Assembly (NCBI GenBank): GCA_964035545.1
Contig: OZ037770.1
Location: forward strand, 15,242,642-15,306,641
Source of the DNA: Bugula neritina
Taxonomy: Eukaryota; Animalia; Bryozoa
Length of the DNA stretch: 64,000 nucleotides
Direction of reading: 5' to 3'
In this document: piece after piece, positions 17,583 through 50,253 of the stretch
How the letters are laid out: each line of letters starts with the position of its first letter
Numbering within the stretch: position 1 is the first letter of the stretch
Notes under the pieces: generated by a model
The model's database searches: none
Seen by the model: only the letters and a program-made list of their open reading frames with translations
What the model was told of the DNA's origin: nothing
Made by a program: the position numbers and the translations under genes

Positions 17583-20136
17583 ATGAAGTACCAAGTTTTC
17601 CTGCTACTAGCATCGGTAGCTGTCAACCACGGAAATCCTCTGACAACCTCGTAAGTTGGTTTATAAATAATAATTATTTAACTATTAATTATTAATTATG
17701 CTATGTATTGCATATTGTTAGCAATTATCGATAATGATGTACATTAGCTGTCACACTGTCAAGTGAATATATCTCAGTGTACTCTGCAGTTATTCTAGAC
17801 TGTTTAAAATCCTAATATGTTTTTAATATGCATATTTTTGCTATTTGTTGGCTAATTTCTAAATGACTATGTAAGAGTTATGTTGGTGATGCAGCAGTGA
17901 TAGATGCTGTATAGTAGGTTAAAAAATCATTAGTTCAATTAAGTGATAGAATTATATAATAGAACATGTTGCGTATCATAATAATATTATGTATATGGCA
18001 ATGTAATGACAAATGTATTAATCCGATATATGATAGACTTATATATCCTAATATTGGAGTTCATATAATAACATTATGTTAGCATAAAATGATGTTATAG
18101 TCTTTTTATTATCGTTAAGCTATTTATATAACCTCTATCTCAGAAAAATAATTTCTGAAAAATAAAAAAACTCGAAAAAATGATTTTTCGAGAAACAATC
18201 TGTCTTTTAACGATTTATAGTTGGCCATATTTGCACTTCCTTTTGATTGTAGAATTACCAGCCCTCAGCCTACAACGAAATATTGGCAAGAATGTCCACC
18301 TTGGGTGAGAGTTCTGATTAAAGACTCCGGAATTGATATTCAGTGTGCTTCAGCAGCTACCACTCCTCTGACACCTGCAGCTACCACTCCTCTGACACCC
18401 GCAGGTACCACCCCTCTGACACCTGCAGCTACCACACCTCTGACACCTGCAGCTACCACTCCTCTGACACCTGCAGCTACCACCCCTCTGACACCTGCAG
18501 CTACCACTCCTCTGACACCTGCAGCTACCACTCCTGTGACACCTGCAGCTACCACCCCACTGACACCTGCAGCTACCACACCACTGACACCCGGAACAAC
18601 CACACCTCCAGCTGTAGGGGATGTGACGGAAACACCAGCAGCAGTAAAGGAAGTAGAGATGATTGGTACCTCGAAGACGAGAGTAATGGAAACAGAACCT
18701 CCAGCCATACTTCCTCTGCAGTTCCCAGGAACAGACATGGGGATGGCTGCCGAGTCAGTGAATATGCCATCAGTTAGCCAATCAGCATTGGAGCCTGCAT
18801 CAAATCCCCAAATGGTGGCATCAAGTATATCTGATGTTACTTTGACCTTAAGTACGACATTGGCACCCGGACCTCCAAATGCACCAGCTGCACCAGCTGC
18901 ACCAGCTGCACCAGCTGCACCAGCTGCACCAGCTGCACCAGAATTACCATCTGCACCAGTTTCAACATCTGCACCAGGTTCAACATCTGCACCAGTTCCA
19001 ACATCTGCACCAGTTTCAACGTCTGCACCAGGTTCAACATCTGCACCAGTTTCGACATCTGCACCAGAATTATCATCTGCCCCTGAAGTAACATCTGCAT
19101 TAGTTTCAACATCTGCACCAGTTTCAACATCTGCACCAGTTTCAATGTCTGCACCAGGTTCAACATCTGCACCAGTTTCAACATCTGCACCAGTTTCAAC
19201 ATCTGCACCGGTTTCAACATCTGCACCAGAATTACCATCTGCACCAGTTTCAACACCTGCCCCTGAAGTAACATCTGCACCAGGTTTAACATCTGCACCC
19301 GAAGTAACATCTGCACCAGTTTCAACGTCTGCACCAGGTTCAACATCTGCACCAGTTTCATCATCTGCACCAGGTTCAACACCTGCACCAGTTCCAACAT
19401 CTGCACCAGTTTCCACACCTGCACCAGGTTCAACATCTGCACCAGGTTCAACATCTGCACCAGAATTACCATCCGCACCAGGTTCAACATCTGCACCAGG
19501 TTCAACAGCTGCACCAGTTTCAACATCTACACCAGTTTCAACATCTGCACCAGTTTCAACATCTGCACCGGTTTCAACATCTGCACCAGGTTCAACACCT
19601 GCACCAGTTCCAACATCTGCACCAGTTTCAACGTCTGCACCAGGTTCAACATCTGCACCAGTTTCAACATCTGCAACAGTTTCAACATCTGCGCCAGGTT
19701 CAACATCTGCACCAGGTTCAACATCTGCACCTGAAGTAACATCTGCACCAGTTTCAACATCTGCACCAGGTTCAACATCTGCAAACCTGCTATCAAAACC
19801 ATTCATCTTCGGGAAGACACCTCAATTTCTGCAACATCCAAACTGTCCAGGCGTTAAAGGTAAGTTTTGCCTTGCATATCTACACCAAACCACTTGTCCT
19901 TGGGCATCCTAAATAGTTATTTATAAGTTTCCAATGATCTGCTTTCACATTACACATCAGTTGCTTACTTTTATGTTGAACTTGCAGTGCTGCTTGGGTC
20001 AAAGTGTAAAGTCTTCAACCGACAAAGATGTGGTCCCTTCATGCTATACGACCTCTTCTACTGTGTCTGCAACTTTATGAGTCGAGTGAATGCGGCTACG
20101 TGCAGCTCCCAACCTCTGAGTCGTCTACAACCATGA
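17583..20136 (+). CDS. Secreted mucin-like protein A (~607 aa) with C-terminal 6-Cys chitin-binding-like module
   Basis: Exons 17583-17650 (signal peptide [17 protein letters not shown], phase 2), 18253-19859 (P/T/S/A repeats, phase 1), 19988-20136; module [44 protein letters not shown]. Confidence 0.88.
18353..19780 (+). repeat. Coding tandem repeats of mucin A: 24-bp (AATTPLTP)x10, 9-bp (APA), 18-bp ([12 protein letters not shown])
   Basis: Directly visible in DNA and in ORF 18221..19912. Confidence 0.95.
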
Positions 20137-20692
20137 CCTTCCAATCGTTGACAACTTTGACCTCTGACCCCTGAATCATTCACAGTTATAATTCAGTCTA
20201 ACTGCCTGAGCTGCAACATTTTTTATGATAGATTTGAAAATTCTTATACTCAATTTTGCTTTAAAAACATCAAGTGTTTGTTACAAAATTTTATCAAACT
20301 TTGTCATGCTTGCGATTGTAAAACTTTTAGTATTTTTTTATTAAACTGATTTTTTAGAAATTTGCTTGTAAATTTGAATTTTATTCAACACGGAGACAAA
20401 TATATGTCACAATTCACACAACTGCATATAACATGCAACTTAGTTTTAAGACCTAATTAATTATTATCCTGTAACTATTTAAAATTGCACCTCATTGAAT
20501 AATGTTATTAAAGCAGTCTTACATACTTCTTGGTAAAGTATTTAGTCTAAACAACGGTAAACATCGAGACTACAATGAAATGCTGAATCGTTACTGTCTT
20601 TTGATTCAAAAGAAATGCAGCTGCATATTACCACATGGAATGTCTAAAAATAGTTTTGATCAAAACACAGTTAAATAATTGGTATGGTAAAT

Positions 20693-20894
20693 AAAACTCA
20701 CGCAAGTCCCTGTGAGAAACCCCTGATAGAAAGGGTTTTTGATAAAGCGGGCTAAGGACTTATTTAAATGAGGCACAGGAGCAATTATGACTGGATGCTC
20801 TTCCTAACATCACCAATGGCCTTTGTCTGGGCTCGAACCCATGACCTCCTGTTTACTAGACAAACGCTCTAACCCCTAGACCACGGCTGCTCCC
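20693..20894 (-). mobile_element. tRNA-derived SINE, copy 1
   Basis: Reverse complement of the element at 39139-39350; A box TGGTCTAGGGG and B box GGTTCGAGCCC; 17-bp TSD TAATTGGTATGGTAAAT at 20676-20692 and 20895-20911. Confidence 0.9.
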
Positions 20895-21281
20895 TAATTG
20901 GTATGGTAAATTTTGCCATTATAGTTGGTAATGCTATTGTATACAGTAGCTTGTCTGAATTAGTAAGAAGATAAATCCATATAATATTCAAAAATAAAAT
21001 TGTTGATTTTAGCAAGCAAAAACTTTTGGTTAGGATAATCCATTAAAAGAAAATATTTATGCAACTAGTATGCATCTGTGCATTTTTATTTACAATAAAT
21101 GTAATTAAAATTATCTATTTATATTACAACTCTGTAATCAAAACAGCATTAATTATGATTTAATAAGTATTTTAAAGCCAACTTTCTGAGTAAATAGTTA
21201 TTAACAAGTTAGAATATTTAATAAGACTTTTAGAATCACAATTTTAAATTGTATGAAAAACAACCCAGTTTTGCTAGCCGT

Positions 21282-21321
21282 ACTGTATCAACTGTATCAA
21301 CTGTATCAACTGTATCAACTA
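21282..21321. repeat. 9-bp tandem repeat (ACTGTATCA)x4
   Basis: Directly visible. Confidence 0.85.
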
Positions 21322-24300
21322 TATAGTTTTGGTATGTTGCCAGATCTTTTATATAAACTCATATGAAATGTTAATTGACACATCTAAGCAGCCTCTGTAG
21401 GTGTTCAGATTCAGAAATGAAAGATACTGCTATGTTAAGCCTCCCTCTAATAAAATGAAACACCCAACACTGATAGAACCCCAGCTGCTTCAATTAAAGT
21501 TTAAATAAAGTTTAAATACCATTAGAGATCATCATTCATAGACTTCTACTGTTAATTATGCAAATATTTATTATTTAGAGATACATGCAATAAATAATTT
21601 GACAAAATTGTTTTTTTAACTGATTTATATTTTGTAAAATCATGAAACTATAAAACAAAACCTATATGCAGTAACAGTGGATAAATTATTTCAGCCTGAT
21701 TAGGGTAGACCTATAGTGAGTGTGTTAAAAGACAGGAGCTTCTTCAGCTGACTGAGAAAGCAATTTGCTGTCAATCAGGTTTCAGCTACTGCTGCTATCA
21801 ACTGCCTAATAAGTAGAATAAAATCTATAGCTGAAAGATTAAAATCTTGCTGTTTGATAAAATATAATAGAGTAGTTTGCCACAGCAGGAGTATATTCAA
21901 ATACAGGAGTTTCTTCTACATATTTCAAAACGAACCAAATATATTAATGACTGGTTTTGTTTTCATAACATTTATAGAACTGCTATAACTGAGCTGCTAA
22001 TAGCTTAGGTCTCTTAAATGTATTTTTGATTGATAATCTATAGTCTAGTTCAATTAATTTACTATTTTCATAACCACTATAGCTAAAAATAAAAACTTTA
22101 TGTAACTTACTAATTAAGAATGTGTCTAACTGAAACAAAACAATAACTTTATTATCAAAAATTGCAAATTCTTGAACGTTTGGGCAGTTGATTATGATTT
22201 TTATAATCTGTTACTTTGAAAATGCAAAAATAATGAGTCATGGGAATAATATGGACCCGACCTTTATACAGCAAGCTGTCCGCCCAAATGAGTGGAACTA
22301 TAGAGGCATGGAAAGCTTCATTAGTCACGTAATTAGTATCATATTTAAATTTCAGATGCTCCATTTGAAGTACACTTAATTAGCATCACTTATATACAAA
22401 TTCAGTTTTAAAGAGCAATGCTACATAATTATTGAGGTCAATTTCAGTTCTTCAGACACTCCTCTCATTTTCTAGCCAAGTAAACTGTTAATATTATGCA
22501 TACCATAACAAGGGCATGAGAAAAGCAGTGCGTCATCAAATTGAAGAAACATAACATAACATTTGGGTGTATTAAACATTACTATGGCTTATATATCAAT
22601 TAGATTAGGAATTAAACAAAGAAATCGTCAATGGTTTTGTAAAAACATATAATATAACATACATTTATCCAAAGTTGTGGTTATTTATAAAGTTATTAGA
22701 TAATGGGAAGGTTTTGGCAGTCGCAAAAATCAATGGTAACGCCCCCAATCATTCTCTTCAGCATACCTTAAGTAAAGAGATATCGCCACGTGAATAATGC
22801 AATGCTAACTGGTTAGACTACGTATGAAGCAGCATAAATCTTACTGTTTAATGTTATAAAGAAACTGATATATACTCAGGTTATGACCTCAAGTAATACT
22901 TTGGTTAAGATATTAACATGAAACTGTTCAGCTTAAACAACCCGGAAACATTTAAACTAATGCTGCATGAAAACATAAACCAAACTTCAAAACAATATAT
23001 AATTAATTCCTATTTGACAAAGTCCATAAAAGCAAAATTGATAAGTAAGAAAGAGCATGACTTTTATCTTAGTCCTAATGCCTTTCCTTTATTAAGAAAA
23101 TTTTAATGATATTTACTTACGTAAAAACTCGGTGCCTTTTCTTTCTCTTTGAAAATTCTGACCAGAATAATTTTTTTGGCTCAAACTATGCTGGCGCTGT
23201 ATAGCGTTATTGTTATAGGAATAATAATCTAATGTTCACCGTAACATCATGTTCACTGCAAGTATTGTATATGTGTGACACTGAGCAAGTGTCTAGTGGT
23301 AGAAGCTAGCCTAATGGAAGTATCTTAGGAACTGTATATATACGCTCTGTTAGCCTGTAAGATGTCACATGGGGCTTCCATTGCATCTTAGTCCTACATA
23401 AGGTTGTCTTATTTTAGACAAAAAATTTAGTAATTTTCATATGAAAATACAACAATAAAAACAATTGAAATGAACTTCTTTTGATTTTAAAAATTAAGCA
23501 CAAATATTATCATTTGTATAAAATCAAATCGGTACAAACATGGCATAAAACTAGTTATTGCGTTAAGGGTTTTACAAAAAAATTATATTGTTACAAATTT
23601 GGGGAACAAATTGCAGAAATAGAATGCAAACTAGTATCTAAGGAAACCAAATGTAATTTAAAAACTATTCAAAAATGTTAAAAATAATGGCAATAAATGT
23701 GTTAGTCTAGACTCTAGTGTGTATTGGATTTGAAATTTCACAGAGCTTGTATTGCCAGCTTCATGTCAAAATAGCCACATACGGCTTGTTTAATGCAATG
23801 AGTTTACTGTTTAGGGAACCCTTAACTTTGACATATTCATGCTTTTTCTTTCCTTGAGCATAGCTAAACATGAGGTAGAACATACGATTAAGCACACTCT
23901 GTGTAAGAAGTTGTCATCTCTTACTCATTTTCACTCTGTTATATCATACTACCTGTTTGTATGTTGTTATATCATACTACTTGTTTTTATGTTGTCATAA
24001 AACTGTAACGTTGATTGAATTTTACATCCTAAGCAAGAAAGTGTTTGAGAGAGACAGGTGTACCCAGGAGGCAGCCTATACCAATCTTCTACTGTAATGT
24101 GATTACATGGCTGACAAGAAGTTGGTTTTCAAGTATATAGAATACATGAGTAAATTAATTTAAACATGATGCTAGGCTGTACATTGCCCTTCTGCTCATT
24201 AATAATTACTTTAGCTCTCAAATGCCTAATCGACTTATTTAAATTCCATGCATAATTTATGTGGTCTTTCATTCATACTAATTTACCAACAAATCATTTA

Positions 24301-25720
24301 AATTATGGTGCCACAAAACCCCAGCATAGAAATTTTTTGCCAACATTTCCGAAGGAAAAGGGCATTTTTGCAATGTGCAAAACCTGCACTGTACAGTGGA
24401 AACCTAAAGAACCAAAATAATTCAACATGAAAATAATTATGGTTACAGATTAGAATAAATCACAATGAACTAAGTTGGGAAATGCATTGTGAATTCTAAT
24501 ATCATTGTTTACTTTGCATAAATAATACGTTTTTATGCTGATCTACCCTCCTCATCATGCCCTGTCCTCCCAGTTCCAATGCCAGCATATGCTCGTGCAT
24601 TCATTGTTTGTGTGCAAAAGAAACTATTTCATTGAGGCGGTGGTTGCATTACATATTTAATTATTATATTACAATAACCAAATAAATAATATATGGGATG
24701 GTAGCATCTCAGATTATGTTAATAGTATGTACAGTGTCAGTTTTTCACAATAGCGCATTTATTAATATAAACTATTACATTTGGGAGTAAAATTAGAAAC
24801 GTTTTATAGAATGAGACACTTTTGAATTTACGTCAGTTTCAGTTTTTTTTAGTAAATTAGGCTTTTGCATTCACCGTTTTTTGCTAATTTAAAAAGTACA
24901 CTTGCAACCACTCCTAGAGGGGTTTAACTACAAACTGCATATCATTTAACACAAAAATAAGCTTTTAAGTGCTTTTGTAAACAGCTGAAACATGTTTAAA
25001 GCTCAAACATTAACTGCAACTAAAAATAACAAATTAAGTTCTCTGATCCTGCTGAAATTTGGCGCACATCCAAAAAGAACGATTTCTCTGCCTAAAACTA
25101 ATATACCAAGTAGTTGCAAAGAACTCAGAGATTTAAACATACTGCATGGTTTATGGCACTTTGCCCACTCGAAGTATGTCATGTCAATTTAGAATACATA
25201 CAATAGTCATGCTGCCACTCTTAGAAAAGTCAGCTAATAGACTTTCAGAGGAGTGGCTGCCACTTCTCAATCTAGAGAGAGTGCTTCTACTAACTAGACA
25301 CTCTCTGATTGGCTGCAACTCTAATATTAGTATTATTGACAGCTTTTGCAATACTCTCACAAGGCATGTTTAACTGTGATTCGAATTGTACTTAAGCAAG
25401 TGTGAAATATTTGATCTACAATTTTATTTGAATTCTTTTAACTAGAATTTGTTTGTTTCTTCTTTGTTTAAAGTAGAATCAATATTGAACGTACCATGTT
25501 ATTCTGCATGGGTTTGACCAATAATACAGGAATATTTAACCCTAATTTAGGTTGATAAATTAGTACAGGCTTAAATTCATTTACAATAAAAACATCTGCT
25601 TGTTTATTAGTACCAGTATTCTACGTTATTTATAACAAAGATTTGTTTATATTATTTACTTTAATTTTCTAATGGAACTGTGCTATGGTGGGTGCTAAAT
25701 GCAGTTGAATACACACATTT

Positions 25721-25912
25721 GATTGGCCAATTAAAATGATGTTTTAAAAAGCAACCAATCAAAAATCAGATACAATTACTAGTAATTAACAAATGCAACT
25801 AATTTAAATTTCGACTCAAAATAGCACTTAAGCATATTTCTTACCCGCCCAAGAATGGTAGTATCCTTCCTATAAGATATAAATATAGCTTACGCTGCCC
25901 TTCTGTCTCAGT
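25721..25912 (+). promoter_or_regulatory. Core promoter of mucin B: CCAAT boxes, TATA box, Inr
   Basis: ATTGG/CCAAT at ~25722-25731 and ~25755; TATAAATA at 25878; Inr TCAGT at 25908-25912 (A is 32 nt after the TATA start); ATG at 25943. Confidence 0.65.
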
Positions 25913-25942
25913 GTACGACAGAAAGGCTTACTGGAAACTACC

Positions 25943-28900
25943 ATGGACTCTCTGAAAATACTCATTACGATTTCTGTGCTCTGTACTTGCAGTGGACACC
26001 CTATTACCGGAGGGCAACATGCTCACCAAACGTATGTATTCTAACCTGTATTCACTACTCTCTTGTGGTTAAGTTATTTTTAAAACAATAAAATAATAAA
26101 TTTTGTTCAGTAAAATAATCAGTGAAATAGGTAACAGCTAGTAGCATATTACAAGCATTTTTTGTATAACTAGCTAGCTTTTCATTTCTTTCTTTTATTT
26201 ACTAATTTTTTTTATACTTTCTTAAAGTATGGCAAAATACAAAGGTAGTTGTCAGGATTTAGCATGGGTTAATTATGTTTCACGTGGTCTAGCTGTAAAC
26301 ACCACAATGCACGTTAAATTTATTTTCAAGTTTGCTAAAAGCAACCGCATAAAAACAATTAACATAGATAGTATTATTTTAATTATGTGCAGAAATCATG
26401 TGTAATAATAGAATGTCAGTTAGCACCATATGCAAATTATGTTTTATACAATAGGTATCTAATAATATATTATTTTACTACCAAGATAAGTTGTGAGGTG
26501 TCACAATTTATTTTAAATACATATGCAAAAGTTAACAATTGATGGGTTCAGTTATCAATGTTAAAATTGGTAAAATTTGCTCTTACAGATCGTATATGCA
26601 ATCTTAAATAGAAACAGAAATGAAATAAGCTGCTGTAAAACAGATAGAGATACTTAAAATTGTCTTTTAATTTAGGATAGCATAGAAATTTAAAAGTTAT
26701 GTATTTTAAAATTTAATATGATTGATATTTCTATAAAATTAATTTTGTTTTTATAGCCCCACTGCTACCAACACCCATGTGAATGAAGTTAACAAGGTGG
26801 ACTGCCCGGGTCCAGTAAGACAGCTGTTTACCACGTTGGACATCCTTTACATGTGTAAGCCTGAAGTGGCTATCCAACCACACTCCTTACCTCCATCTCT
26901 ACCAGGTGAACCCACTTCAGTTCAGCTAAACTCTGTCAAACCAGTCAGTGGTGGGTTGGAGCCAGGAGTGGTTGCAGCCACAGCCCCCCAGGAGCCACTT
27001 CCAGGAAATCCAGTAGAACAACCAACACCTGTAGCTGCTAAGGCTGCAACACAGCCAACAACTGTAGCTGCTAAGGCTGCAACACAGCCAACAACTGTAG
27101 CTGCTAATGCTGTAACAGAGCCAACAACTGTAGCTGGTAACGCTCAAACACAACCCACAACTGTAGCTGCTAATGCTGCAATACAGCCAACAACTGTAGC
27201 TGCTAATGCTGCAACAGAGCCAACAACTGTAGCTGCAAATCTACCAACAGAGCCAACAACTGTAGCTGCTAATGCTGCAACAGAGCCAACAACTGTAGCT
27301 GCAAATCTACCAACAGAGCCAACAACTGTAGCTGCTAATGCTCAAACACAACCCACAACTGTAGCTGCAAATCTACCAACAAAGCCAACAACTGTAGTTG
27401 CAAATGTACCAACAGAACCACCAACTGTAGCTGCTAATGTACCAACACAACCCACAACTGTAGCTGCTAATGTACCAACACAACCCACAACTGTAGCTGC
27501 AAATCTACCAACAGAGCCAACAACTGTAGCTGCTAATGCTCAAACACAACCCACAACTGTAGCTGCTAATGTACATGTTCAGTCCACAGCTCATCCTACA
27601 AATATACCAGCTCAACCAACAGTACTGCCAGTTCAACCAGCAGCTAGCCATTTGGATCCAGCTCAGACACATACAGCACCAGGAGATCCAGGAGTTCTTG
27701 CCATAAAGATTATGGAAGGACAGTTTTTTGGTACCACCGCTGCATCTGGCAACCTGCCAAAACCAGTAGACGCACCATCCAAGCCAAACAATAATGCTCC
27801 ATCGCAAAAAGCTAACCAGTCTAACAAGGGAGCATCCGCTAAGTCAGGGCAGACCATGGCAACCCAAGAAACTATCAAAGCTAACAAAGAATGCCCATTT
27901 TACATTTTACCATTGTATCAGCACTTAGGGATTGCTAACTTATGCCCAACAGGCGCTAGTCCAAAAACTACTACCTCTGGTGTCTCAAAATCTGCTACAC
28001 TTACTACAGCTTCTCCAAGTAGTTCAACAACGACGCTATCATCAGCTCCACCTGCGCCAACAACTGGACAAACCACAGCTGTTTCATCCCCAACAGCAAC
28101 TGGACCAACTACAGCTGTTCCATCTCCAACAACAACTGGGCCAACCACAGCTGTTCCATCCCCAACAGCAACTGGACCGACTACAGCTGTTCCATCTCCA
28201 ACAACAACTGGGCCAACCACAGCTGTCCCATCTCCAACAACAACTGGGCCAACCACAGCTGTCCCATCTCCAACAACAACTGGGCCAACCACAGCTGTCC
28301 CATCTCCAACAACAACTGGGCCAACCACAGCTGTTCCATCCCCAACAGCAACTGGACCAACTACAGCTGTTCCATCTCCAACAACAACTGGGCCAACCAC
28401 AGCTGTTTCATCCCCAACAGCAACTGGACCAACTACAGCTGTTCCATCTCCAACAACAACTGGGCCAACTACAGCTGTCCCATCTCCAACAACAACTGGA
28501 CCAACCACAGCTGTTCCATCTCCAACAACAACTGGGCCAACCACAGCCGTACCTTCTTCAACAACAACTGGGCCAACCACAGCTGTTCCATCTCCAACAA
28601 CAACTGGGCCAACCACAACTGTTCCATCTCCAACAACAACTGGGCCAACCACAGCTGTTCCATCTCCAACAACAACTGGGCCAACCACAGCCGTACCTTC
28701 TCCAACAACAACTGGACCAACCACAGCTGTTCCATCTCCAACAACTACTGGGCCAACCACAGCTGTTCCATCTTCAACAACAACAGGACCAACTACAGCT
28801 GTTTCATTTGCACCAACAGATATGACGACCACACCTGAACCATCCACCATGTTCCCAATACTTGCTTTAAAATTTTCGGGCTTGGATCCATCAATGGGAA

Positions 28901-30131
28901 TAACAAAGACTCATTCTAATCCAGTTGCACCTGCTGATCCAACAACAGCAGCAGCTACTACAGCAGCAGCTACTACAGCAGCAGGCACTACAGTAACAGG
29001 CACTACTGCAGCAGCTACTACAGTAACAGCTACAACAGCAGCAGGGACTACCACTACTGCAGCAGCTACTACAGTGACAGGCACTACAGTGGCAGGTACT
29101 ACAGTAACAGGTTCTACAGTAACAGGCACTACAGTCACAGGAACCACAGCAGCTGGAACCACGGCAGCTGGAACCACAGCAGCAGGAACCACGGCAGCTG
29201 GAACCACTGCAGCAGCCACTACTGTAACAGGCACTACAGTAACAGGCACTACAGTAACAGGCACTACCTCCGCAGGAACCACAGCAGCTGGAACCACGGC
29301 AGCTGGAACCACGGCAGCTGGAACCACAGTAGCAGGAACCACAGCAGCTGGAACTACAGCAGCTGGAACCACGGCAGCTGAAACCACGGCAGCTGGAACC
29401 ACAGTAGCTGGAACCACAGCAGCTGGAACCACAGTCACAGGAACCACAGCAGCTGGAACCACGGCAGCTGGAACCACAGCAGCTGGAACCACTGCAGCAG
29501 CCACTACAGTAACAGGCACTACAGTAACAGGCACTACAGTAACAGGCACTACCTCAGCAGGAACCACAGCAGCTGGAACCACAGCAGCTGGAACCACGGC
29601 AGCTGGAACCACCGCAGCTGGAACCACAGCAGCTGGAACCACTGCAGCTGGAACCACAGCAGCTGGAACCACAATAGCTGGAACCACGGCAGCAGGAACC
29701 ACAGTCACAGGAACCACAGCAGCTGGAACCACGGCAGCTGGAACCACGGCAGCTGGAACCACGGCAGCTGGAACAAACAAGGCGTCATTGAAGAAGGCAA
29801 CTCCTCCCATGAAGTTCCACAAGAATGTTTGTAACGTTCAAGGTTAGTTTTACTATAATTTACTATTTTCAATATTCTTACATTTTATTGATGTGCAGCT
29901 TTTGTTACGCAAGGCACTATTTTATTGCAAAATGAAGCAGGTTTTACCTGCTTTTATCTATTCAATCTTCTGTTGACAGTTCCGGCTGGCCATGACTGCA
30001 AGAAGTTCAACAATAAGCGATGTCCACCACGGACTAGGTACGACGTCAGACTTTGCATCTGCAATCACGAACTCAAAGTTGACCCACAAACCTGCACAAG
30101 TTATTCTCATAATAGTAAGTATCACATCTGA
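25943..30131 (+). CDS. Secreted mucin-like protein B (~1108 aa) with C-terminal 6-Cys chitin-binding-like module
   Basis: Exons 25943-26031 (signal MDSLKILITISVLCTCSG, phase 2), 26757-29842 (phase 1), 29980-30131; module CNVQVPAGHDCKKFNNKRCPPRTRYDVRLCICNHELKVDPQTC. A GTAAGT donor at 30115 may instead splice to a short last exon (30539-30561, NNLLPRL*). Confidence 0.88.
27019..29772 (+). repeat. Coding tandem repeats of mucin B: 33-bp (PTTVAANxxTE/Q), 36-bp (PSPTTTGPTTAV), 15-bp (GTTAA/GTTVT)
   Basis: Three separate arrays at ~27019-27570, ~28060-28805 and ~28945-29772. Confidence 0.95.
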
Positions 30132-34517: not shown

Positions 34518-34558
34518 CTCTTTAACTCAGGTCTAGAAAGACTAAAAGTTTCTACAAT

Positions 34559-36119
34559 ATGAAAGAAGTTTGGTTGGCCAACTTCTGCTTGGTTGCAGTG
34601 GTGTATTCACAGATACCACCGTGAGTATTATAATATTATTCTCAAACATATTTACGATTTGCATAATAATGATAATGCAAATTTGTCACTCTTTGATGTA
34701 TTATCAAGAAGCAGGAGGTTGACGTACTACAAACAAGGTCTAACAACTGAAATTATAGCAATTTGCTGTAATTTAAATTACGCATTTACTAATAAATCAA
34801 ACCAATGTTATTTTAGTTTTATTGATAAACTATCAGTAATTTAATTTGTGCTTTTTTAAAGTATTAAAGCATATTAGGCTTAGATTTCGAAACACAAATA
34901 GTTGTTGCTATTGGGAATCATGCAATCATATTTTACTCTATTCTTAATAAACAACTGCACTTTTAAAGGTATATTATTGCCTCTGCACACCACATTGAAA
35001 AGAGCATATAGCTTTCTGAGTTAAATTCTTGCAGTTTTGTTACTTATTCAGCAGCATTGAGTGATTTAACAACAGCTTCTAATATAGCCTACTGATTTTT
35101 AGCATGACCCCAATAATGGTTAGCTTTCTTTGTTGAAGTTGGCCTAGTAGTCCAGCTAGTATAAGAACTTAATCCGAACTCAAAGCTCAAAAGCTTCAGA
35201 TTTCAGCATCAACATTTATTATTTTCTGTAACTATAATTTATTTTCAATTTAGTGATTCAACCAATAGAGCAGCTGCAGCAGCAAGGCAAGCAACTCCAG
35301 CTACAGTAGCAATCCATGCAAAAGTTACAACAGCTAAGGCTGTCCAAAGTCCTACAGCATCAGTTACTACTTCAGTAGTACCACCAGCACTAACTGCTAC
35401 ACATTCACCTGTTGCTACAGGTACACGTGTTGCTACAGGTACACCTGTTGCTACAGGTGTACCTGTAGCAGAAGGTTCATCTGCTGCTACACATTCACCT
35501 GTTGATAAAGTTGGTAGCCGAACAAATTCCAAGGTCATGACACCAACAACCTCTGCTAAGGACTGCAAAGTTTCAGGTAAAAACTTGCTGCAAAGTAACT
35601 TAAATATAATGACCTTCTATTTGAATTATTATACATAATTGCAGTAGAAAAATTCTATGAAACTCATTTGTATTTATATGTTGCATACTATCTTATTCCT
35701 TGCTATAAACTTTGCACCTGGTAAACAGTTGGAGTCGACTGCAAGACCTACGATGGAATGCCGTGTCCTCCAGGCACCAGATATGATGTCAGAACCTGCA
35801 TGTGTAACCACCACAAGTCGGTGGACCTCTCAACTTGCACTAGCTTACCAGAGTTCATTCCAAACTTGTGTGATGTTAAGCGTAAGTCTTATTACTAGAC
35901 CAGGTGTAGCTTCTTTATCTAGTGTGTATATTAGGTTAATAAATTAAACTACGTCGCAGAAAGGATAAAATTTGCTATACTTATTTTTTCACAGTGAGAG
36001 CGAGATCAGGGTGCTTGGAGTTTGGAACTCAGAAATGTGGGAATGGCACAATATATGACATAAAGCTCTGTATCTGCAACCACGCACCACTGGTTAATGA
36101 GACAACTTGTAGCAGCTAA
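34559..36119 (+). CDS. Secreted short mucin-like protein C (~220 aa) with two tandem 6-Cys modules
   Basis: Exons 34559-34620 (MKEVWLANFCLVAVVYS, phase 2), 35254-35576 (T/A/P/V-rich, phase 1), 35729-35881 (phase 1), 35995-36119; modules CKVSVGVDCKTYDGMPCPPGTRYDVRTCMCNHHKSVDLSTC and CDVKLRARSGCLEFGTQKCGNGTIYDIKLCICNHAPLVNETTC. Not represented in the correct frame in the ORF track. Confidence 0.88.
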
Positions 36120-39100: not shown

Positions 39101-39138
39101 TATAATATAATACAATATAATATATGTTTAAATAGATT

Positions 39139-39350: not shown

Positions 39351-39615
39351 ATATGTTTAAATAGATTGCAGCATCCTTTAAATACTTGCAATTGCTTTTC
39401 TCATGAACTTACAAACTGCCCACGTAAAACTTTTATTTAAAACTCACAAATGAGATGTTCAATTTAAGTAATTTTCAGCCTCTGCTGCCGTGTAAGTTTG
39501 ATAAACGTAAACCTTATATAGTCCTGCGTTTTAGTAGACAATGAGGTTCGTAATATGTACCATATACAACATTAAGGCTAAATAAATTAAATTAAAGTAA
39601 TAATTATAATTAACC

Positions 39616-39617
<2 letters not shown>

Positions 39618-39655
<38 letters not shown>
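39618..39655. repeat. (TA)n microsatellite
   Basis: Directly visible. Confidence 0.9.
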
Positions 39656-39658
<3 letters not shown>

Positions 39659-41311: not shown

Positions 41312-41508
41312 GTAATATAATATATGATACAACATATTATAATAAATAATACAATATAATATAATATATAATACAACATATTATAATAAATAATACAACA
41401 TATTATAATAAATAATACAATATAATATAATATATAATACAATATAATATAATAAATAATACAATATAATATAATATATAATACAATATAATATAATAAA
41501 TAATATAA
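41312..41508. repeat. AT-rich degenerate minisatellite (TAATACAATATAATA-type units)
   Basis: Tandem degenerate units visible; source of spurious ORF 41302..41523. Confidence 0.8.
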
Positions 41509-41769
41509 GATGTAATTTGACATGATTTGGGCTGCGTTTCTAATTTTTTGTTGAAAATAAAAACCTTTAGCAATGTTTTATATTGATTTAACCTCTACTC
41601 ATACAATCTCAAAACTCAAGATTCACAAATCCACAATTTTAATTAGATTTTGTAAAGAAAACTCAGAAGCTTGAGTAAAATAGTTTATTCAAATATATAA
41701 ACTATAATAAATAAGTATAAACCAACATAAACCATATTTTCAGCTCTGCATTTCTTGAAGCGATAGCCC

Positions 41770-42062
41770 TACCCCCCTATTCACACTTACTGTATCGTGG
41801 GCCGTAAAATATATAGGCCTAAACGCAAAATATCAGCCATTTTTAATGTGTCCAAGCTGAAATTTTCCAAGTTCACTGTTAGGTACGATCTATGACACTT
41901 CATTGGACAGTTATATTCAATGAGTTGACGCAGAAGTTTTTGAATCAAGCAGTGTTTGATCCTACCTCACTGCAACACACCGTACAGGAAGCTTAGACAT
42001 TTGTAAAAATGGCTAATATTTGCTGTTACGGCTTACGATACGGTAAGTGTGAATAGGTGGTA
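41770..42062. mobile_element. MITE / non-autonomous DNA transposon, ~35-bp imperfect TIRs, TA-flanked
   Basis: CCCCTATTCACACTTACTGTATCGTGGGCCGTAA ... TTACGGCTTACGATACGGTAAGTGTGAATAGGTGG; inverted homolog at 46644-46947. Confidence 0.85.
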
Positions 42063-42519
42063 AGCTCTTAGATTAAAATCCTGTAAGGTTTGTTGATCTA
42101 TGTTTTGGTCCATATGGAAAGCCTGGGGGCATGCTAGCATACGAAAACATCCTATTTTTGATTATATGAAAATACTCTTAACAATTAAGACATAATTTAA
42201 ATTTACCGCAGGCTTACGTCACACAGTCATGTAAACAGATATTAATAATTTGGGGAACTGAAACATTCAATAAATTTTTCTTAAAGTATGTACTTTAACC
42301 TTGTTAAAAAAGTTACTAACATTTCATAGTACTCAGTGGTCAAGAGAAAGGGGGCTTTTTGAGATTTGTAAGTAAAGAGATGACTCTTTTTTAGAGAAAT
42401 GAAAATTTCTTTTTAGAGCTTTGAACTCTAGTATCTAAATACATTGGTAACAAATAGCGACCTGAACTGAAGTCTGAAAAATAAATTTAAGTTTAACTAG
42501 GGGTTTAGATGGCACTCTG

Positions 42520-42565
42520 CATCCACCCCTTTATTGATAGCTCAGACTAGGCAAACTATATAAAG
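42520..42565 (+). promoter_or_regulatory. Putative promoter of mucin D (CACCC box, TATA)
   Basis: ATCCACCCC at ~42521, TATATAAAG at 42557, ATG at 42618. Confidence 0.5.
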
Positions 42566-42617
42566 GAGCGCAGCATTCAGAGAAGTGATTTATTTAATAA
42601 CAATTATCAGATGCGAG

Positions 42618-45188
42618 ATGGCACAGTGGCAGGCAGTGATCGTATGCATTCTACTAACCTTGGAGGGGTGAGCAGTCATTTTTTATGTTGATGTTTTGAT
42701 TTTCTTTTCAAATATTTAAAATTTGAGTTAAAAGTTGAAAAAACATAAAATCATTTGCATGCAGCTGAACTAAGCATATAAAGGAATATTTATTATTGCG
42801 ATGTTTATTAATATAGGGGTAGGTGTTTCCCATTTCGAAAATAGTCATATATAGGCAACTGCTTTTTATTGAAAAAAATTTCAAACTGTTATGGGAATTG
42901 CTGAAAAATATCTTTAAAAAACTAAACTAAAATTATTAACTAGACATTTCAACAATCAAATTTATTTATTGCTTAGAATAAAAACACAGAACTCACCAAC
43001 TCCAAACTCTCCTCAGTCATCCAACCATCAGGGAGAGGCTTTAGCAGCAATTTTGAATGCATTTCTAAACTCCAAACCTAATCAGACTCAACCTACGGCA
43101 AACTCACCTCCTCAAAAAGCTGTAGAGAAATCATGGGTAGATGTCCTGCAGGACACCATGGTGTCGGCTTTGAGACAGCCCCCCAGCCCTGCTGCTCAAC
43201 CTTTACTACCAGGAGATCCACCTGCACCAACTTCTTCCACAGCGCCAGGAAGTCCAACTGCATCAGCTGCTCCCACAACTCTAGCCAATCCAACTGCACC
43301 AGCTGCTCCCACTGCTCCAGGAAATCCAACTGCACCAGCTGCTCCCACAGCTCCAGCAGATCCAACTGCACCAGCCGCTCCCACAACTCCAGGAAATCCA
43401 ACTGCACCAGCTGCTCCCACAACTCCAGCAGATCCAACTGCACCAGCTGCTCCCACAACTCCAGGAAATCCAACTGCACCAGCTGCTCCCACAACTCCAG
43501 CAGATCCAACTGCACCAGCTGCTCCCACAACTCCAGGAAATCCAACTGCACCAGCTGCTCCCACAGCTCCAGCAGATCCAACTGCACCAGCCGCTCCCAC
43601 AACTCCAGGAAATCCAACTGCACCAGCTGCTCCCACAACTCCAGCAGATCCAACTGCACCAGCTGCTCCCACAGTACCAAGAGATCTAACTGCACCAGCT
43701 GCTCCCACAACTCCAGCAGATCCAACTGCACCAGCTGCTCTCACAACTCCAGCAGATCCAGCTGCACCAGCTTCCACAGCAGTCTCAAAAGATCCGACAC
43801 TGAAGTCTAGCACAGCAGCACCAGTAAATTCAGCAACTCCAGTTGCACCCTCTGTGTCTCCTACCGTTACAACAAACCTTAATAATCCACAGACTTCTGC
43901 ATCTGGTGCAAAACCCCCAGCTTCAACATCAACTACACCACTGGTGACGTCAGACTCTGTACCCCAACTTCTGCACACTACAACAGCTGCTGCCAGTCAA
44001 GGCACAACGTTTCAACCTTTACCTTCTAGCCCAGCCTCTCCAACATCTCAATCTCCAGCAACACCACTAACAGTCTCTCCCAGCACAAGCAATAGACAAT
44101 TACGTCAACATTTGCAAAACATCCTTCAAGCTCATGGAATAAACTTACCAAAAGTATCATCAATAATGCAAGTGCCGCCAGCGCAGAGTGTTACTCCAAT
44201 CTCTAACCCAGTGTCAAAGAAAGCCACGACAGTAGCGGCTTTAGAAGGAGTAAACGTACCAACAACAGCACACACTCCAACTACTGTTCACAGTTCACCT
44301 CAAGTAACTGTGATTACTGGTACAGTAGTGGGGACAAAAGCATTGCCTGCAGCAACTACTGCGTCCCAACCTGTAGCTGTAGCAGCAACTTTAAGTTCCA
44401 CACAACCTACTGCTGGAATGACTACAGAGTCACAAGCTGCAGCAAAGATGAAACCGGCAGTTACAAATGCTCCCACACTGGCAGGACTGTCTGAACTTGC
44501 CAACCGTGTTCCAACTCAAAGTGCAAAGACCACAGCGTCAGCAACAGCTGCACAAGTTCATTCTACTGTAGCAGTAGCAACTTTGAGACTAACAACCCCT
44601 GCTGCTCCCTCAGGCACTGCACCTTCAGTGCCAGTCAACCAGCCAACACAGTCCTCTGTGGCATCTCTGCTCAGCATCCCTTCCAAACCTTCTGTGAAGT
44701 TCTCAGTGCAGAACAGATGTGGTGTGATAGGTAAACAGTATTATAATATACTAGTATTATGATAATTTTTTGTGAGCAAAATTTGCCAGCAATTTAAAAT
44801 AAAGATGATAGAATATTACTTTATGTAAATTAAGCATTACTATTTAAAATTAATTGCTAAAGAAACATAAAAAATAAATAAATAATAATTCATAAAGATA
44901 TAAATTATTGAATTAATGATGAAGATGAAAGGTAATGCAAATGAAAATTATAGACAATTGGAACTACTGAATTCTTTCTCAAGTGCTCTTTGTATTTCAG
45001 CGCTATGTATTATGTAATATGCATTATTGCTTATACACTAAAACTTCCATAATTTATTTTCAGTTACTCCTGTAAACAAATGTGCAACCTTTAATGAACA
45101 ACTTTGCCCACCCGACACAGCATATGACCTGACGTTTTGTGTGTGTAATCACATATCTAAGGTGAACACGCAGACTTGCACAAGTTAA
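42618..45188 (+). CDS. Secreted mucin-like protein D (~642 aa) with C-terminal 6-Cys chitin-binding-like module
   Basis: Exons 42618-42667 (MAQWQAVIVCILLTLEG, phase 2), 42977-44730 (phase 1), 45064-45188; module CGVIVTPVNKCATFNEQLCPPDTAYDLTFCVCNHISKVNTQTC. Confidence 0.88.
43240..43770 (+). repeat. Coding 36-bp tandem repeat of mucin D (PTAPAAPTTPGN / PTAPAAPTTPAD alternating, 72-bp higher-order unit)
   Basis: Directly visible in ORF 42969..44762. Confidence 0.95.
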
Positions 45189-46643
45189 TTGGTAAGTTTC
45201 TTCCTTTTGACATAAACCTTATTGTTTCTAGCTACATGTGGTTGGTGTTTTATACTGAGCTGCACGGTTTTATCTCAAATCCTTAAAATGCTGTATTGCA
45301 ACTATTATATAATTATTTCTTTTTTACATTTTAGTAGAACTGCCAACTACAGTGACGGGCTTCATGGCGAACTAATTCCTTAAAAGTATTTTGTGTCAAA
45401 GTCAAATAACTTTTGCTTTCAAATATATTTTATGAGTTTCACATAATTATGTATTTATTTTTTAAATAAAATAATGATTAAAATAAAATTTTACTTTATC
45501 GAGTCAAATCCTTCTACCTACATACAAACACAATTGCAGTTATATTTCTAGCTATTTTATCGGCTTGGATACATGCAACATATGTCTGCAGGCAAAGTTT
45601 CCGCATGGATAAAAGATATGCAATATTACTGAATAATAATATTTGAATAGATTATCTTGAGTTTAAATTAAAAAGCATTTCTTAAAATATGTAAGCTTCA
45701 AGAAAAACAGAAAATCAAAGTCAAGAGCTAAAAACATCTGTAACATTGCTACATTTAAATAGAGTGATTGAAGACATAACTATAGTCTTAGCCTCTCAAT
45801 AGATGCTTGCAATTTTCAAACTGACATTGCAAAGTTGTCTGCACATGTGGCTGCTGCTAATAGGAGCCGATATTATTTTGATGCTGCAGTATAATTGAAG
45901 ATATAGTTAATGCTTTCAACTGTCCCAGTTGTTTGTCTAACAGATAAATTATATATAGTATATCACTAAATGCTAGTTTACAGGCTTTACATGAGAGCAC
46001 AACGATACCTGTGACGTAATTAAATCAAGAGAAAAGGATCTCAATAAACACATTTTGCGTTATCTATAATGCAACGTGGGAATGACTATATTGCTCAGAT
46101 CTGTTAACAATTTAATGAGGAGTTTATCAGGACAAAAGGAGTTCATAATTTCAAAATAAAGAAATTAGTAACACCTAAATAAGTTATGTGAGAAAAACCC
46201 ATAATTTTTATTGTTACAAATCTTATGTTTATAAGCATTTAAATTGGGGTTGAAAATTGTTAAACAGAATCATTGTGACTCTAATGGCCTTCAGATAGCT
46301 ATCATCATTCTACTGGAATAAAATAACGGAATTACGTTAACTGAATTATAATGATCATAATATAATGATTAGAATTTTACACCAAATCCGGCTTCCTATA
46401 GTATAAGCATATAGGCATTCCCTTAGCACCACCCTACAGCATTACGTAAATTGGGATGATAGTTATTGGGAGTGTAATGTAAATTCCATTGTGTCAATTT
46501 AATAAAGTAGTATTTAAATGTTGTTTTATCAGTTTAATTAGTGCTTTGGATGTTAGTGCTTTTTATGCCATTATTGTAGCAATTCACATGATAGATAAAA
46601 GCATTGTAAAGCTGGTATAGAAGGATATGGAAAGCATTCCATA

Positions 46644-46947
46644 TACCCCCTCATTCACACTTATCGTACCGTAGGCCGTAACACCAAATATCATCCATTT
46701 TTACAAATGTCTGAGCTTCCTGTATGGCGATATGGTACGTTAGGATCAAACACTGCTTAATTCAAAAATGTTGCAGAGGGCTCCTATCTGACAGAAAACT
46801 TTTGCATCAACTCATTGGATATAATTGTCCAATGAAGTGTCGTAGATCTTACCTAATAGCAGACTTTAAAAGCTTCAGCCCGGACACATTAAAAATAGCT
46901 GATGCTTTACATTAGGCTAATGGTACAATAAGTGTGAATGAGAGGTA
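46644..46947. mobile_element. MITE, same family as 41770-42062, opposite orientation
   Basis: TACCCCCTCATTCACACTTATCGTACCGT ... TGGTACAATAAGTGTGAATGAGAGGTA; interior is the reverse complement of the 41770 copy (CAACTCATTG-ATATAA-TGTCCAATGAAGTGTC). Confidence 0.85.
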
Positions 46948-47967
46948 CAGCTCATAGCTGTTACTACTAAGTATGCATCAGCAATATACTGTAATTGATC
47001 TCAAGTCATGATATATACCACAATTCAAATAGTTCTCTTTCCTATTTTACAAGAGACTGATTTCACACTTATAAGAACGCAAGGATTGTTGTTTGTAGCC
47101 CTAATTACCACCCCCTGTGAGACACCCTGGGACTGAAGGCATTGTATTAATTGTGGGTGATGTAATAAATTCTTAGTTTGAGGCAACAGAGCACCTGGAA
47201 ACTTGTTTATCATGGGTAATAATTTATTGCCAAACTGATTATAAATTATTAAAACATACAATCTAGCTACAACTACCTTTGAGTTAAAATATTATATTAC
47301 TTATTAAGGCTTGTGCTGTTTAAGAAGTAATACCTGTTCACAGTGAAGTCTTGAAATGGCATTACAATTTAGAACTATTGACCCAATGCCCTTAAATCAT
47401 GAAATTAACACATGAAATAAGTTTAGATTTTTCAATAGAAGAGGAGTTTTCTTTCCTTAACTAAACTCATAGAAGCTTGAAATTAGTAGTTCATATTCAA
47501 GTAAATGAGTTTTGGTGATCTACAAACCATCTAGAACTTTCTTTAGAACTTATATTATACATACATACTATTAGCTTGGTTTATATATATTGTCAGCTAA
47601 AATTGTTAGTATTTTTACTACAAGCATTACAAAATTTCGAACATTTATAGTGATATTATAATTATTACAATTTATTATTATAAAAAAATTCATTTACGTA
47701 AAATCTTAGTTTGTTGTCTGCTTAGAAAAGATTTTTACGCAAAGCATTGGGAGCAAACCAGCATTTATTATGGTTGTCTTCTCTTGCACTATTAGAGCAA
47801 GAGTAGACAACTTTAGCTCTTTATCTCAATTTCTTTACAAAATGACTAGAAAAAATTAACAGATTTAATTACAAAAAGAAACTCTATCTTGAGTAAATGT
47901 AAATATTAAATAAGTAAAATTTGTTCAGCTTCATATGATAGCATATCAAGGAGCTTTTTATACAACT

Positions 47968-47975
47968 AATATATA

Positions 47976-48055
<80 letters not shown>

Positions 48056-48087
48056 TATAATATATATAATATATATATATTATATAT
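47968..48087. repeat. (TA)n microsatellite
   Basis: Directly visible. Confidence 0.9.
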
Positions 48088-49047
48088 TCAACACAGAAGA
48101 ATACATATCCTTGTTTTTTTGCAATATGCTATTAAATTTATAGGAATATGCAACTTTAATTATTATATGAAATAGCTTATACTTCAAAAGTTTGATGTGA
48201 GTCATTCTATTACTATATATATACTTTATATATTACTGTTTAAAACATTCAATATAAACTAGTTACAGCCCTAGCTATAGCTGTTTACTGTACAACAAGA
48301 TGCAATAACAAGTCTAAATATAGCTCATAATATACAGATCATCTCTCTCACATCTCACTGTGTATCTGAAGGGTACAGGCATATTCAGCACTCTCAGTTC
48401 TCATAAATCATTCTAATAACGTAATTATAGTATCATCTCCTTCTAAAACCCTCTTCCTGAATGATTCATACTATTTTCCACTTCATAGCATTGGCTATTT
48501 CATGCTTTATTAGAATGTTGTCATGGAAACGGAAATTAATTACCTGGCATTTATACTAGTTAAGCTGTTTATGCTCTTCAAGGAGTGTATGAAGATTTTT
48601 AACCCTTTCATGCACAGGGTTCACGTAGCAAAAAACTGAGTGATTTTGAGATTTGTGTTAAATTAACTTGAACTAAAATAATTTCTTGTCATTAGTTTTA
48701 CTAAATTTCTCATATTTCTTCATTACTTTTACAATGTTTTATACGAAAACATGTATATTTAAACTATAACAATTAGTTATACTGCTTATAAGAAAAAAAT
48801 CATTGTGTTTTTAAGTGATCCCTGAATGTTTTAAATTTAAAAAGAGTGTTGTTTGTTATAAAATAAAAACTAATTTACTGATGTGTATTGAAATTGTACA
48901 GGAGGATTATAAAATGAGTTCTGAGCTAATAGGGGTTCATCATGTAAAGCTATACGCTCCTGTCTAAAAGATGATGGCAATTATTATATATATATATAGA
49001 TAACTAGCTAATTATAACTTTGTTACTTGACTACTAGTTATTACAGG

Positions 49048-50253
49048 ATGAGTAGGAAAATGGTGAAAACTGTGCTCTGTATTGCCATAGTTCTGAGTGT
49101 TATATTCTCTGTAGATGCAACCAATGGATTTGGTAATGGCGGAAACAGAGAGACTAACGGACAGGGGTAAGTTTCAATAATTCTTTGAATTTATATAATT
49201 TTTGATATGTTTGTTCATTACGTATTGTTATAAAACTAAATGGTTTGTTTTGAACAACACATAGAATTAGAATTACCGCAAGTTTATCAGAAATGTATTT
49301 GACAAAGAACGTTGAAGCTTAGGTCGTGCAGCAAACAAAATTAAAATTGTTATTTGTAGTAACACAAATGGAAAGGAAGAGTTCGATTGCAATGCATTTA
49401 TGGGGTCAATAAAGAAAGTTCTCCCTAATTCAAATAGTCTTGGGGACATCCTCACACTCTCCCGGTGTAGGGATCAACCAACTGGATCTTCAGCTACCAC
49501 CACACCTACCAGAAGTGCTAGAACCATCAGAACTACCAGACTACCAACATCTACTGCTACCACTACAACTACACTAAGATCACCTACTACTACAACTACT
49601 ACAACAAAATTATCTACTGCTACCACTACAACTACAACACAATCACCTACCACTACAACTACAACACAATCACCTACTACTACAAGAACTACATCAAGGT
49701 CATCTACTACAACTACAACTACTACAAGAAACACACCACAACCACCCACTTCTACAACCACAACACAATCACCTACTACCACGATGACAGCTGATTCAAC
49801 AAGAACAAGTTACATTCCAAACAAATGTGGCTACAGAGGTACAGTTAATACTCTCTATAATAATTTACTAATTGCTGTATTTTACAGAGTCTGCTAAGAG
49901 GAATAAGAAATCATTTTCAATCCTATCTTTTAATTGATCTCAGAATTTCTCTGCTTGACTAAGCTGATAAGAATATACATTCTATTAGCAATGATACCCT
50001 AATTAATCATTTTTATTTCGGATTAGTCTGTATTCTATACATATAGCTATATATTTACATATGACATCTAAATGTGCAGTAAATTAAAATACTATATAAT
50101 TGTATTGCGATTCTAGTGCCAAGCCAAGAAGAGTGTAAAGTATTTGGACCGTTCCGCTGTCCAGGCTTGTTGGTGTTCAATGTACAGAGCTGCAGCTGTG
50201 ACTACAGATCCTCAGTGAACCTTTCAACCTGCCGGACAATTTCTCAAGCATGA
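49048..50253 (+). CDS. Secreted Thr-rich mucin-like protein E (~207 aa) with C-terminal 6-Cys chitin-binding-like module
   Basis: Exons 49048-49166 (MSRKMVKTVLCIAIVLSVIFSVDA, phase 2), 49471-49838 (poly-Thr, phase 1), 50117-50253; module CGYRVPSQEECKVFGPFRCPGLLVFNVQSCSCDYRSSVNLSTC. Confidence 0.88.

Follow-up and report, generated by a model that had tools for sequence, protein, structure and literature searches.

Insect intestinal mucins and mucin-like peritrophins consist of a signal peptide, a region rich in Pro, Thr and Ser (PTS) and one or more CBM14 domains, which tie the glycoprotein to chitin. CPAP1-type cuticle proteins are built from the same kinds of parts. Herein, we describe a gene cluster with this architecture in the bryozoan Bugula neritina, located in a 64,000-nucleotide stretch of DNA (hereafter the window; assembly GCA_964035545.1, contig OZ037770.1, positions 15,242,642 to 15,306,641). 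Compared with the insect proteins, the binding module is shrunken and placed only at the extreme C-terminus, and the family is bryozoan. A GenBank protein of B. neritina (KAF6025010.1, P0025) matched this assembly at only 68-90% identity per exon. We consider it probable that the clustered genes encode secreted mucin-like proteins of a family specific to bryozoans, and that their module is a miniaturised CBM14 descendant, likely anchoring a repetitive stalk to chitin.

Five tandem genes on the + strand occupy positions 17583-50253 of the window, and reading of the sequence and its splice signals revealed one common design: a putative signal-peptide exon, a large repeat exon rich in Pro, Thr, Ser and Ala, and a module exon of approximately 40 amino acids, separated by a phase-2 and a phase-1 intron, respectively (Table 1). 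In all five genes, the first exon codes for a hydrophobic leader and ends with a phase-2 GT donor compatible with the phase-2 acceptor of the large exon. Open frames of 107-1028 codons span the large exons, whose Pro, Thr and Ser content is 38-65% (58-70% with Ala), and tandem repeats of 15-99 nt are present in four of them (genes 1, 2, 4, and 5). The window is AT-rich, with about 30% GC outside the coding repeats. The splice junctions were deduced from the donor and acceptor sequences together with Watersipora gene models that have a matching intron position. A first-pass annotation, made from the sequence alone, had proposed five same-strand genes of common exon and phase design encoding secreted mucin-like paralogues. 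The splice-signal reading of the five genes bore out the design, and the leader exons and PTS-rich repeat exons support the proposed nature of the products.

A six-frame motif scan located six modules in the window and no others. They lie on the + strand, are about 45 residues long, and stand at the extreme C-terminus, with one or two copies per protein. When the six were aligned, five Cys residues were invariant with a spacing of 7/10/1/10 in every module, and the mean column identity was 46%. Further shared positions were an aromatic residue ([FY]) three residues past Cys2, [YF][DN] after Cys3, [ND] after the CxC, and a terminal T-C. At the 5' end of all six module exons, an AG acceptor lies behind a pyrimidine tract and is followed by two bases finishing a split codon; likewise, all six preceding exons end with TG[TC], three or four codons and one base before the GT. 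These uniform splice signals indicate a phase-1 intron at the identical module position in all six copies, and they place a sixth cysteine (Cys1) 7-10 residues ahead of Cys2 once the exons are spliced. The full framework after splicing is C-x7-10-C-x7-C-x10-C-x-C-x10-C; whole modules including Cys1 were examined in the Watersipora proteins. The module count, invariant spacing and shared intron after Cys1 thus agree with what had been noted at first.

A profile of the six modules was further searched over the whole 216-Mb assembly in six frames. A seventh module was found 8 kb beyond the window on the - strand (G000:C6:15314866-15314991), with an E-value of 2e-8 for the profile built without it. 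Ahead of this module is a Thr-rich exon ending IPNNCGFI-G/GT (the slash marks the exon-intron boundary), indicating that this sixth cluster gene (L007, G000:C6:15314866-15315600, - strand) has the same exon design as the genes of the window.

A seven-module profile was then searched against 1.84 billion representative proteins at E<=1e-3. It gave 40 matches, seven of which were full-length: three proteins of Watersipora subatra and four exon-sized open reading frames (ORFs) on environmental contigs of ENA and Logan, whose sources include ERZ4903308, ERZ4903326 and SRR25569782. The Watersipora proteins are P0001 (427 aa, a PTS region and two modules), P0002 (163 aa, two modules), and P0006 (325 aa, resembling gene 5), and their genes, which share the signal-PTS-module design, are clustered at 5.96-6.11 Mb on one chromosome of GCA_963576615.1. 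Gene 3 of the window, with its two modules, has the same design as P0001 and P0002. When P0002 was mapped with tblastn, both of its module introns fell at the same phase-1 position as in the window genes. On one environmental contig (L035), a 580-codon PTS-type ORF ends C-P-W-V-K-G/GTAAG directly before a module exon. Most of the other matches that were checked were Pfam-positive multi-CBM14 proteins, which matched on profile positions of about 11-40 only. Searches for annotated or transcript-derived proteins spanning the junctions returned P0002 itself only for the P0002 query and none for the gene 4 large exon and the gene 5 exon; for the gene 5 exon, low-complexity words probably swamped the candidate list. 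A Phytophthora kinase in the same 90% cluster as the module fragment P0007 was without the module and was discarded as a cluster artefact. Judged from these sequences, the family is conserved in a second cheilostome family and looks specific to bryozoans, in line with the lineage-specific distribution claimed by the first-pass annotation.

The matches also included P0033 and P0038 from the cuttlefish Acanthosepion pharaonis and P0013 from Logan contigs, which are acidic, Ser-rich proteins with a 4-Cys repeat of the form C-x-R-K ... Y-[LM]-Q-F-[IV]-E-G-x-G-W ... C-P-x-G-T-A-Y-[SN]-x2-D-C-x-C. P0013, the one of the three that was scanned, was without a Pfam CBM_14 match. They may represent a further repeat of lophotrochozoans that derives from CBM14 and has so far gone undescribed.

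The relation of the module to CBM14 was assessed by sequence. The Pfam CBM_14 family (PF01607) has a gathering cut-off of 22.1 bits, and when the modules were scanned at E<=10, two of the six gave sub-threshold scores of 17.6 and 14.9 bits, at profile positions 28-49 only. No CXCXC, EGF, TIL or other Pfam family besides CBM_14 was matched at this threshold. We then aligned 16 CBM14 exons of the same genome, which revealed two forms, the canonical one and a CxC form, which has another residue in place of the canonical third Cys and an additional Cys two residues ahead of Cys5; many domains of the CxC form pass Pfam. The module similarly lacks the canonical third Cys, which makes a close Cys2-x5-Cys3 pair, and has a CxC in place, with six Cys in total. 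Since CBM14 copies accepted by Pfam in the same genome carry a CxC, this feature is not distinctive of the module. In profile-profile comparison with hhalign, the modules matched the same-genome CBM14 domains with 95.4% probability (E 1.7e-8, 23 columns), and the complete Watersipora modules matched the CxC-type subset with 96.5% (E 8.5e-10, 32 columns). The latter alignment ran from Cys2 and the x2-Phe element through Cys5, with one 8-residue gap in the module. On this sequence comparison, the module is a CBM14 homologue that is detectable at the profile-profile level. A further tie to CBM14 is that the module profile, outside the family, mostly retrieved Pfam-positive CBM14 proteins.

The likenesses and differences can be located precisely. 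Like CBM14 (PF01607, SMART ChtBD2), the module has six Cys, [FY] three residues past the second Cys, and a Cys-Pro-x-Gly-x-x-[FY]-[DN] hairpin followed by Cys-[DN]-aromatic. The [FY] after Cys2 and the residues of the Cys-Pro-x4-[YF]-[DN] hairpin were kept in all 12 complete or partial modules, and the residue following Cys5-[ND] was H, F, Y or similar in nearly all modules. However, the module has about 45 residues compared with about 53-60 in CBM14; eight residues are missing between Cys2-x2-F and the Cys-Pro hairpin, the first loop is somewhat shorter, and the Cys5-Cys6 loop comprises 10 residues rather than the 6-7 or so of the CBM14 domains in this genome. Unlike CBM14, the module is also cut by a phase-1 intron after Cys1-x3.

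The remaining matches in the B. neritina genome covered the C-terminal two thirds of the module profile only and fell into two groups. The first comprised domains passing Pfam CBM_14, arranged as CxC-type arrays at C2:27.39 Mb and C3:28.33 Mb. The second comprised twilight forms, with 16-19 bits on CBM_14 or no score. Among the latter, modules with a CxCNHW motif and a CBM_14 score of at most 16.5 bits were seen at G000:C6:13.83-13.86 Mb (L009-L011, L024) and G000:C7:537626 (L008). The CxC arrays and the CNHW modules have the CxC and the Cys2-x2-F element in common with the compact module, but their Cys2-Cys3 loop has remained long and each is encoded by a single exon, whereas the compact module is split by an intron and, unlike the arrays, does not pass Pfam CBM_14. 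A Cys-Asn-His motif and a last loop of 10 residues are further features that the CNHW modules have in common with the compact module. Thus, one genome holds a graded series of canonical CBM14, CxC form, CNHW form and compact form, in which the CNHW modules, by their sequences, seem to stand between CBM14 and the compact form.

For the structure, P0002 was modelled with AlphaFold2 from a 14-row alignment. The predicted local distance difference test (pLDDT) was 74-91 over both modules, which were predicted as small beta-hairpin units; in the model of P0006, the module had a pLDDT of 79-94. A search independent of Foldseek was carried out with the P0002 model against 48,161 PDB representatives at Z>=2. 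Only six chains were retrieved, and all six were of CBM14 type: Aplysia EHEP (8IN3, Z 3.4), Avr4 (6BN0 and 4Z4A, Z 3.1 each), Der p 23 (4ZCE, Z 2.7), Blo t 12 (2MFK, Z 2.2), and tachycitin (1DQC, Z 2.2). They aligned over 36-47 residues with root-mean-square deviations of 2.4-4.3 A, and the alignments ran across the whole second module of P0002. For predicted models, this is specific but weak support for a CBM14-like fold. The weak rows of Foldseek also contained such structures for both independent models: Aplysia EHEP, Avr4 and tachycitin with P0002, and Avr4 in first and tachycitin in eighth place with P0006, none of them significant. The first-pass annotation had seen a CBM14-like C-terminal half, which the sub-threshold scores at profile positions 28-49 in two of the six modules support. 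Its wording of a non-canonical and possibly undescribed domain was overstated, given the CxC in Pfam-passing domains of the same genome, the hhalign probability of 96.5%, and the exclusively CBM14-type chains at Z>=2. It had also named an ordinary full CBM14 domain as the outcome that would speak against its proposal; on that point, the modules stay below the 22.1-bit cut-off, and their kinship with CBM14 emerges in the profile-profile comparison.

According to the above results, we propose the following reading. Each protein would carry a cleavable leader, a fast-evolving stalk of Pro, Thr, Ser and Ala repeats, presumably with dense O-glycosylation, and a C-terminal module in one or two copies. 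The module was probably derived from the CxC form of CBM14 common in this genome, by loss of about eight residues between Cys2-x2-Phe and the Cys-Pro hairpin and lengthening of the last loop to 10 residues, with the hairpin aromatics kept. By analogy with the insect proteins, it would most likely anchor the glycosylated stalk to the chitin fibrils of the zooid cuticle or of another chitinous lining, and the proteins would thereby coat the chitin or interlink it. The stalks could make up a brush that holds water and protects or lubricates the surface. The short two-headed products of gene 3 and its Watersipora counterparts might serve as linkers that bridge fibrils. The conserved hairpin aromatic and Asp/Asn positions, as far as sequence can tell, favour retained sugar binding.

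Several results weigh against this proposal. The signal peptides were judged by the hydrophobicity of the leaders only, although the leader exons fit the splice phase in all five genes. CBM_14 was not matched by the other four modules of the window, by the seventh module or by the Watersipora proteins, and the latter had no Pfam domain at E<=0.01. Foldseek gave no significant E-value with the P0002 or the P0006 model. The structural Z-scores were low (2.2-3.4), as expected from a length of only 45 residues, and the wide structure search with P0006 was uninformative on the module since its match list was filled by a predicted long helix. Searches for transcript, proteomic or expression data on the cluster found none. 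Finally, the deleted segment lies in the core sheet of CBM14, and binding could therefore be altered or lost.

This last point leads to the strongest alternative, which we regard as possible but unlikely: the module is of CBM14 descent, but chitin binding has been lost, and the module, a compact disulfide knot, serves protein contact (mucin dimerisation or cross-linking) or binds another glycan or a mineral surface. C-terminal cystine-knot domains, which cross-link gel-forming mucins, offer a parallel, and the constant position of the module at the extreme C-terminus fits it, as do the loss of about eight core residues and the rewired Cys pattern. Moreover, His, Phe or Tyr stands after Cys5-Asn in the module, whereas the other CBM14 copies of the genome mostly have W at this position (CxWP consensus). 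Other ligands are also known for the CBM14 fold; Aplysia EHEP, the top structural match, was crystallised with tannic acid according to the title of its entry. The core deletion and the altered residue after Cys5 would allow for a different ligand or for a function in protein contact. However, the retention of the hairpin aromatic, the Asp/Asn and the [FY] after Cys2 in 12 of 12 modules argues against this alternative, and the module has no unpaired seventh Cys suggestive of the intermolecular disulfides of cross-linking. Along a related line, it is rather doubtful that the compact module forms a minimal domain of new function. It would then be either among the smallest chitin-binding units of animals, with about 45 residues and part of the CBM14 core missing, or a CBM14 hairpin retooled for another ligand such as a different glycan, a mineral or a partner protein.

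It is quite improbable that the module represents a new disulfide-rich fold of small size that arose independently and resembles the CBM14 hairpin by convergence. The sub-cut-off Pfam score would be compatible with this idea, as would the non-significant Foldseek rows and the PDB sequence search with the module profile, which gave no significant match and, at E~1, weak rows including the C-terminal regions of two chitinases. The ESM Atlas provided no usable feature match; its structural rows with a low template-modelling (TM) score were CBM14 clusters mixed with unrelated ones. Against convergence stand the hhalign probabilities of 95-96.5% with Cys2, Cys3, Cys4, Cys5 and the x2-F element matched, the graded series from CBM14 to the compact form in the same genome, and the six structural matches, all of CBM14 type.

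Membership in the CXCXC repeat family (VEGF-C/Balbiani ring protein 3, PF03128) or in the six-Cys tail of AA15 lytic polysaccharide monooxygenases (LPMOs) is very improbable: the C-x10-C-x-C spacing is reminiscent of the CXCXC repeat and a VEGF-C cluster was among the low-TM Atlas rows, but none of the six modules matched PF03128 at E<=10, and the module profile did not match the Cys-rich exon adjacent to the LPMO_10 match described below. The AA15 (LPMO15-1) tail resembles the module as a small six-Cys unit on chitin-related secreted proteins, and it ends in a CxC. The repeat of insect LPMO15-1 reads C-X15-C-X3-C-X6-9-C-X4-C-X1-C and, according to its authors, is unrelated to CBM14 (PMC9156745). 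Identity with this tail was rejected on the Cys framework, which is x3 / x4-9 / x4 / x1 in the tail and x7 / x10 / x1 / x10 in the module. At G000:C4:2372000-2373300, next to the sole match to PF03067 (LPMO_10) in the B. neritina genome, is an exon carrying a pair of six-Cys repeats of the LPMO15-1 type, which follow C-x7-10-C-x3-C-x4-6-C-x4-C-x-C (~6822-7217 of locus L053, + strand). A second, similar copy lies on the - strand (~555-983 in the reverse-complement numbering of L053).

The module is thus an unusual, lineage-restricted short form of CBM14 within a familiar architecture; it does not constitute a domain class of its own. As the combination of mucin and CBM14 is already known, no new principle is involved, and the interest beyond specialists on bryozoans and chitin-binding domains is moderate to low. 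Within these fields, the family is of value in several respects. Bryozoans are major fouling animals, yet protein-level descriptions of their chitinous cuticle, which many species calcify, are scarce; a literature search on bryozoan chitin-binding proteins or mucins found nothing specific to this family, which provides concrete candidates for a glycoprotein layer on the cuticle. The module is also a natural experiment on how far a chitin-binding domain can shrink and its disulfides be rewired, and the series within one genome could reveal how small disulfide-rich domains shrink. In addition, it marks a blind spot of domain models, with Pfam assigning no domain to the window proteins or to the annotated Watersipora orthologues. 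If the reading as a minimal domain were true, there would be a bryozoan-specific class of cuticle or adhesive mucins with relevance to biofouling.

Table 1. Exons of the five tandem genes and their six modules (M1 to M6) in window coordinates; a slash marks an exon-intron boundary
Feature	Position	Strand	Details
Gene 1 exon 1	17583..17650	+	ATG and hydrophobic leader, 22 codons; phase-2 donor TC/GTAAGT
Gene 1 large exon	18253..19859	+	535 codons; 53% Pro+Thr+Ser; 24-nt and 18-nt tandem repeats; 3' end C-P-G-V-K-G/GTAAG (Cys1, phase 1)
Gene 1 module exon M1 (Cys2-Cys6) and stop	19988..20136	+	In-frame motif range 19990-20133
Gene 2 exon 1	25943..26031	+	ATG and leader peptide; phase-2 donor AC/GTATGT
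Gene 2 large exon	26757..29842	+	1028 codons; repeat arrays of 33/99, 36 and 15/45 nt; two short helix motifs flanked by Cys; end C-N-V-Q-G/GT
Gene 2 module exon M2 and stop	29980..30131	+	In-frame motif range 29982-30128
Gene 3 exon 1	34559..34620	+	ATG and leader peptide; phase-2 donor CC/GTGAGT
Gene 3 short Thr/Ala/Pro-rich exon	35254..35576	+	107 codons; end C-K-V-S-G/GTAAA
Gene 3 module exon M3	35729..35881	+	Also holds Cys1 of M4 (PEFIPNLCDVK-C/GTAAG); in-frame motif range 35731-35895
Gene 3 module exon M4 and stop	35995..36119	+	In-frame motif range 35997-36116
Gene 4 exon 1	42618..42667	+	ATG and leader peptide; phase-2 donor GG/GTGAGC
Gene 4 large exon	42977..44730	+	584 codons; 36-nt repeats and a non-repetitive Ser/Thr/Ala/Pro-rich half; end C-G-V-I-G/GTAAA
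Gene 4 module exon M5 and stop	45064..45188	+	In-frame motif range 45066-45185
Gene 5 exon 1	49048..49166	+	ATG and leader peptide, then GFGNGGN..NGQ; phase-2 donor GG/GTAAGT
Gene 5 Thr-rich exon	49360..49838	+	Alternative acceptor 49438; end C-G-Y-R-G/GTACA
Gene 5 module exon M6 and stop	50117..50253	+	In-frame motif range 50119-50250

Besides the module, a short amphipathic helix was noticed at the non-repetitive start of several large exons, often between two Cys and roughly of the pattern C-x2-3, a hydrophobic heptad-like stretch, and C. In the window, it was located at ~18290-18350 (gene 1), ~26800-26860 and ~27880-27950 (gene 2), and 49380-49460 (gene 5), and it also occurs in residues 57-87 of Watersipora P0006 and on the environmental contig L035. 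AlphaFold predicted a helix in this region of P0006 with a pLDDT of 53-70. The element matched no Pfam family, and a BLASTP comparison of the gene 5 exons with P0006 was not significant, although the same helix motif was aligned. Next to the module, this helix may be another part that the family has conserved.

For the second exon of gene 5, the start at 49360 is more likely than that at 49438, because it retains the Cys-bracketed helix motif, as in the Watersipora counterpart. The GFGNGGN..NGQ stretch in exon 1 of this gene is similar by eye to the start of P0006. In the module exon of gene 2, a strong GTAAGT is present 14 nt before the in-frame stop, in phase 1 as in the module introns. Gene 2 may have an extra downstream exon or may have lost a second module; the six-frame motif scan revealed no additional module between genes 2 and 3.

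An Rfam search of the window gave no match. Upstream of the cluster, two long ORFs of 549 and 476 codons on the - strand (6683-9832) show likeness to the endonuclease and reverse transcriptase of non-long terminal repeat retrotransposons. This putative retrotransposon lies between a ROCO-caspase gene and the mucin cluster.

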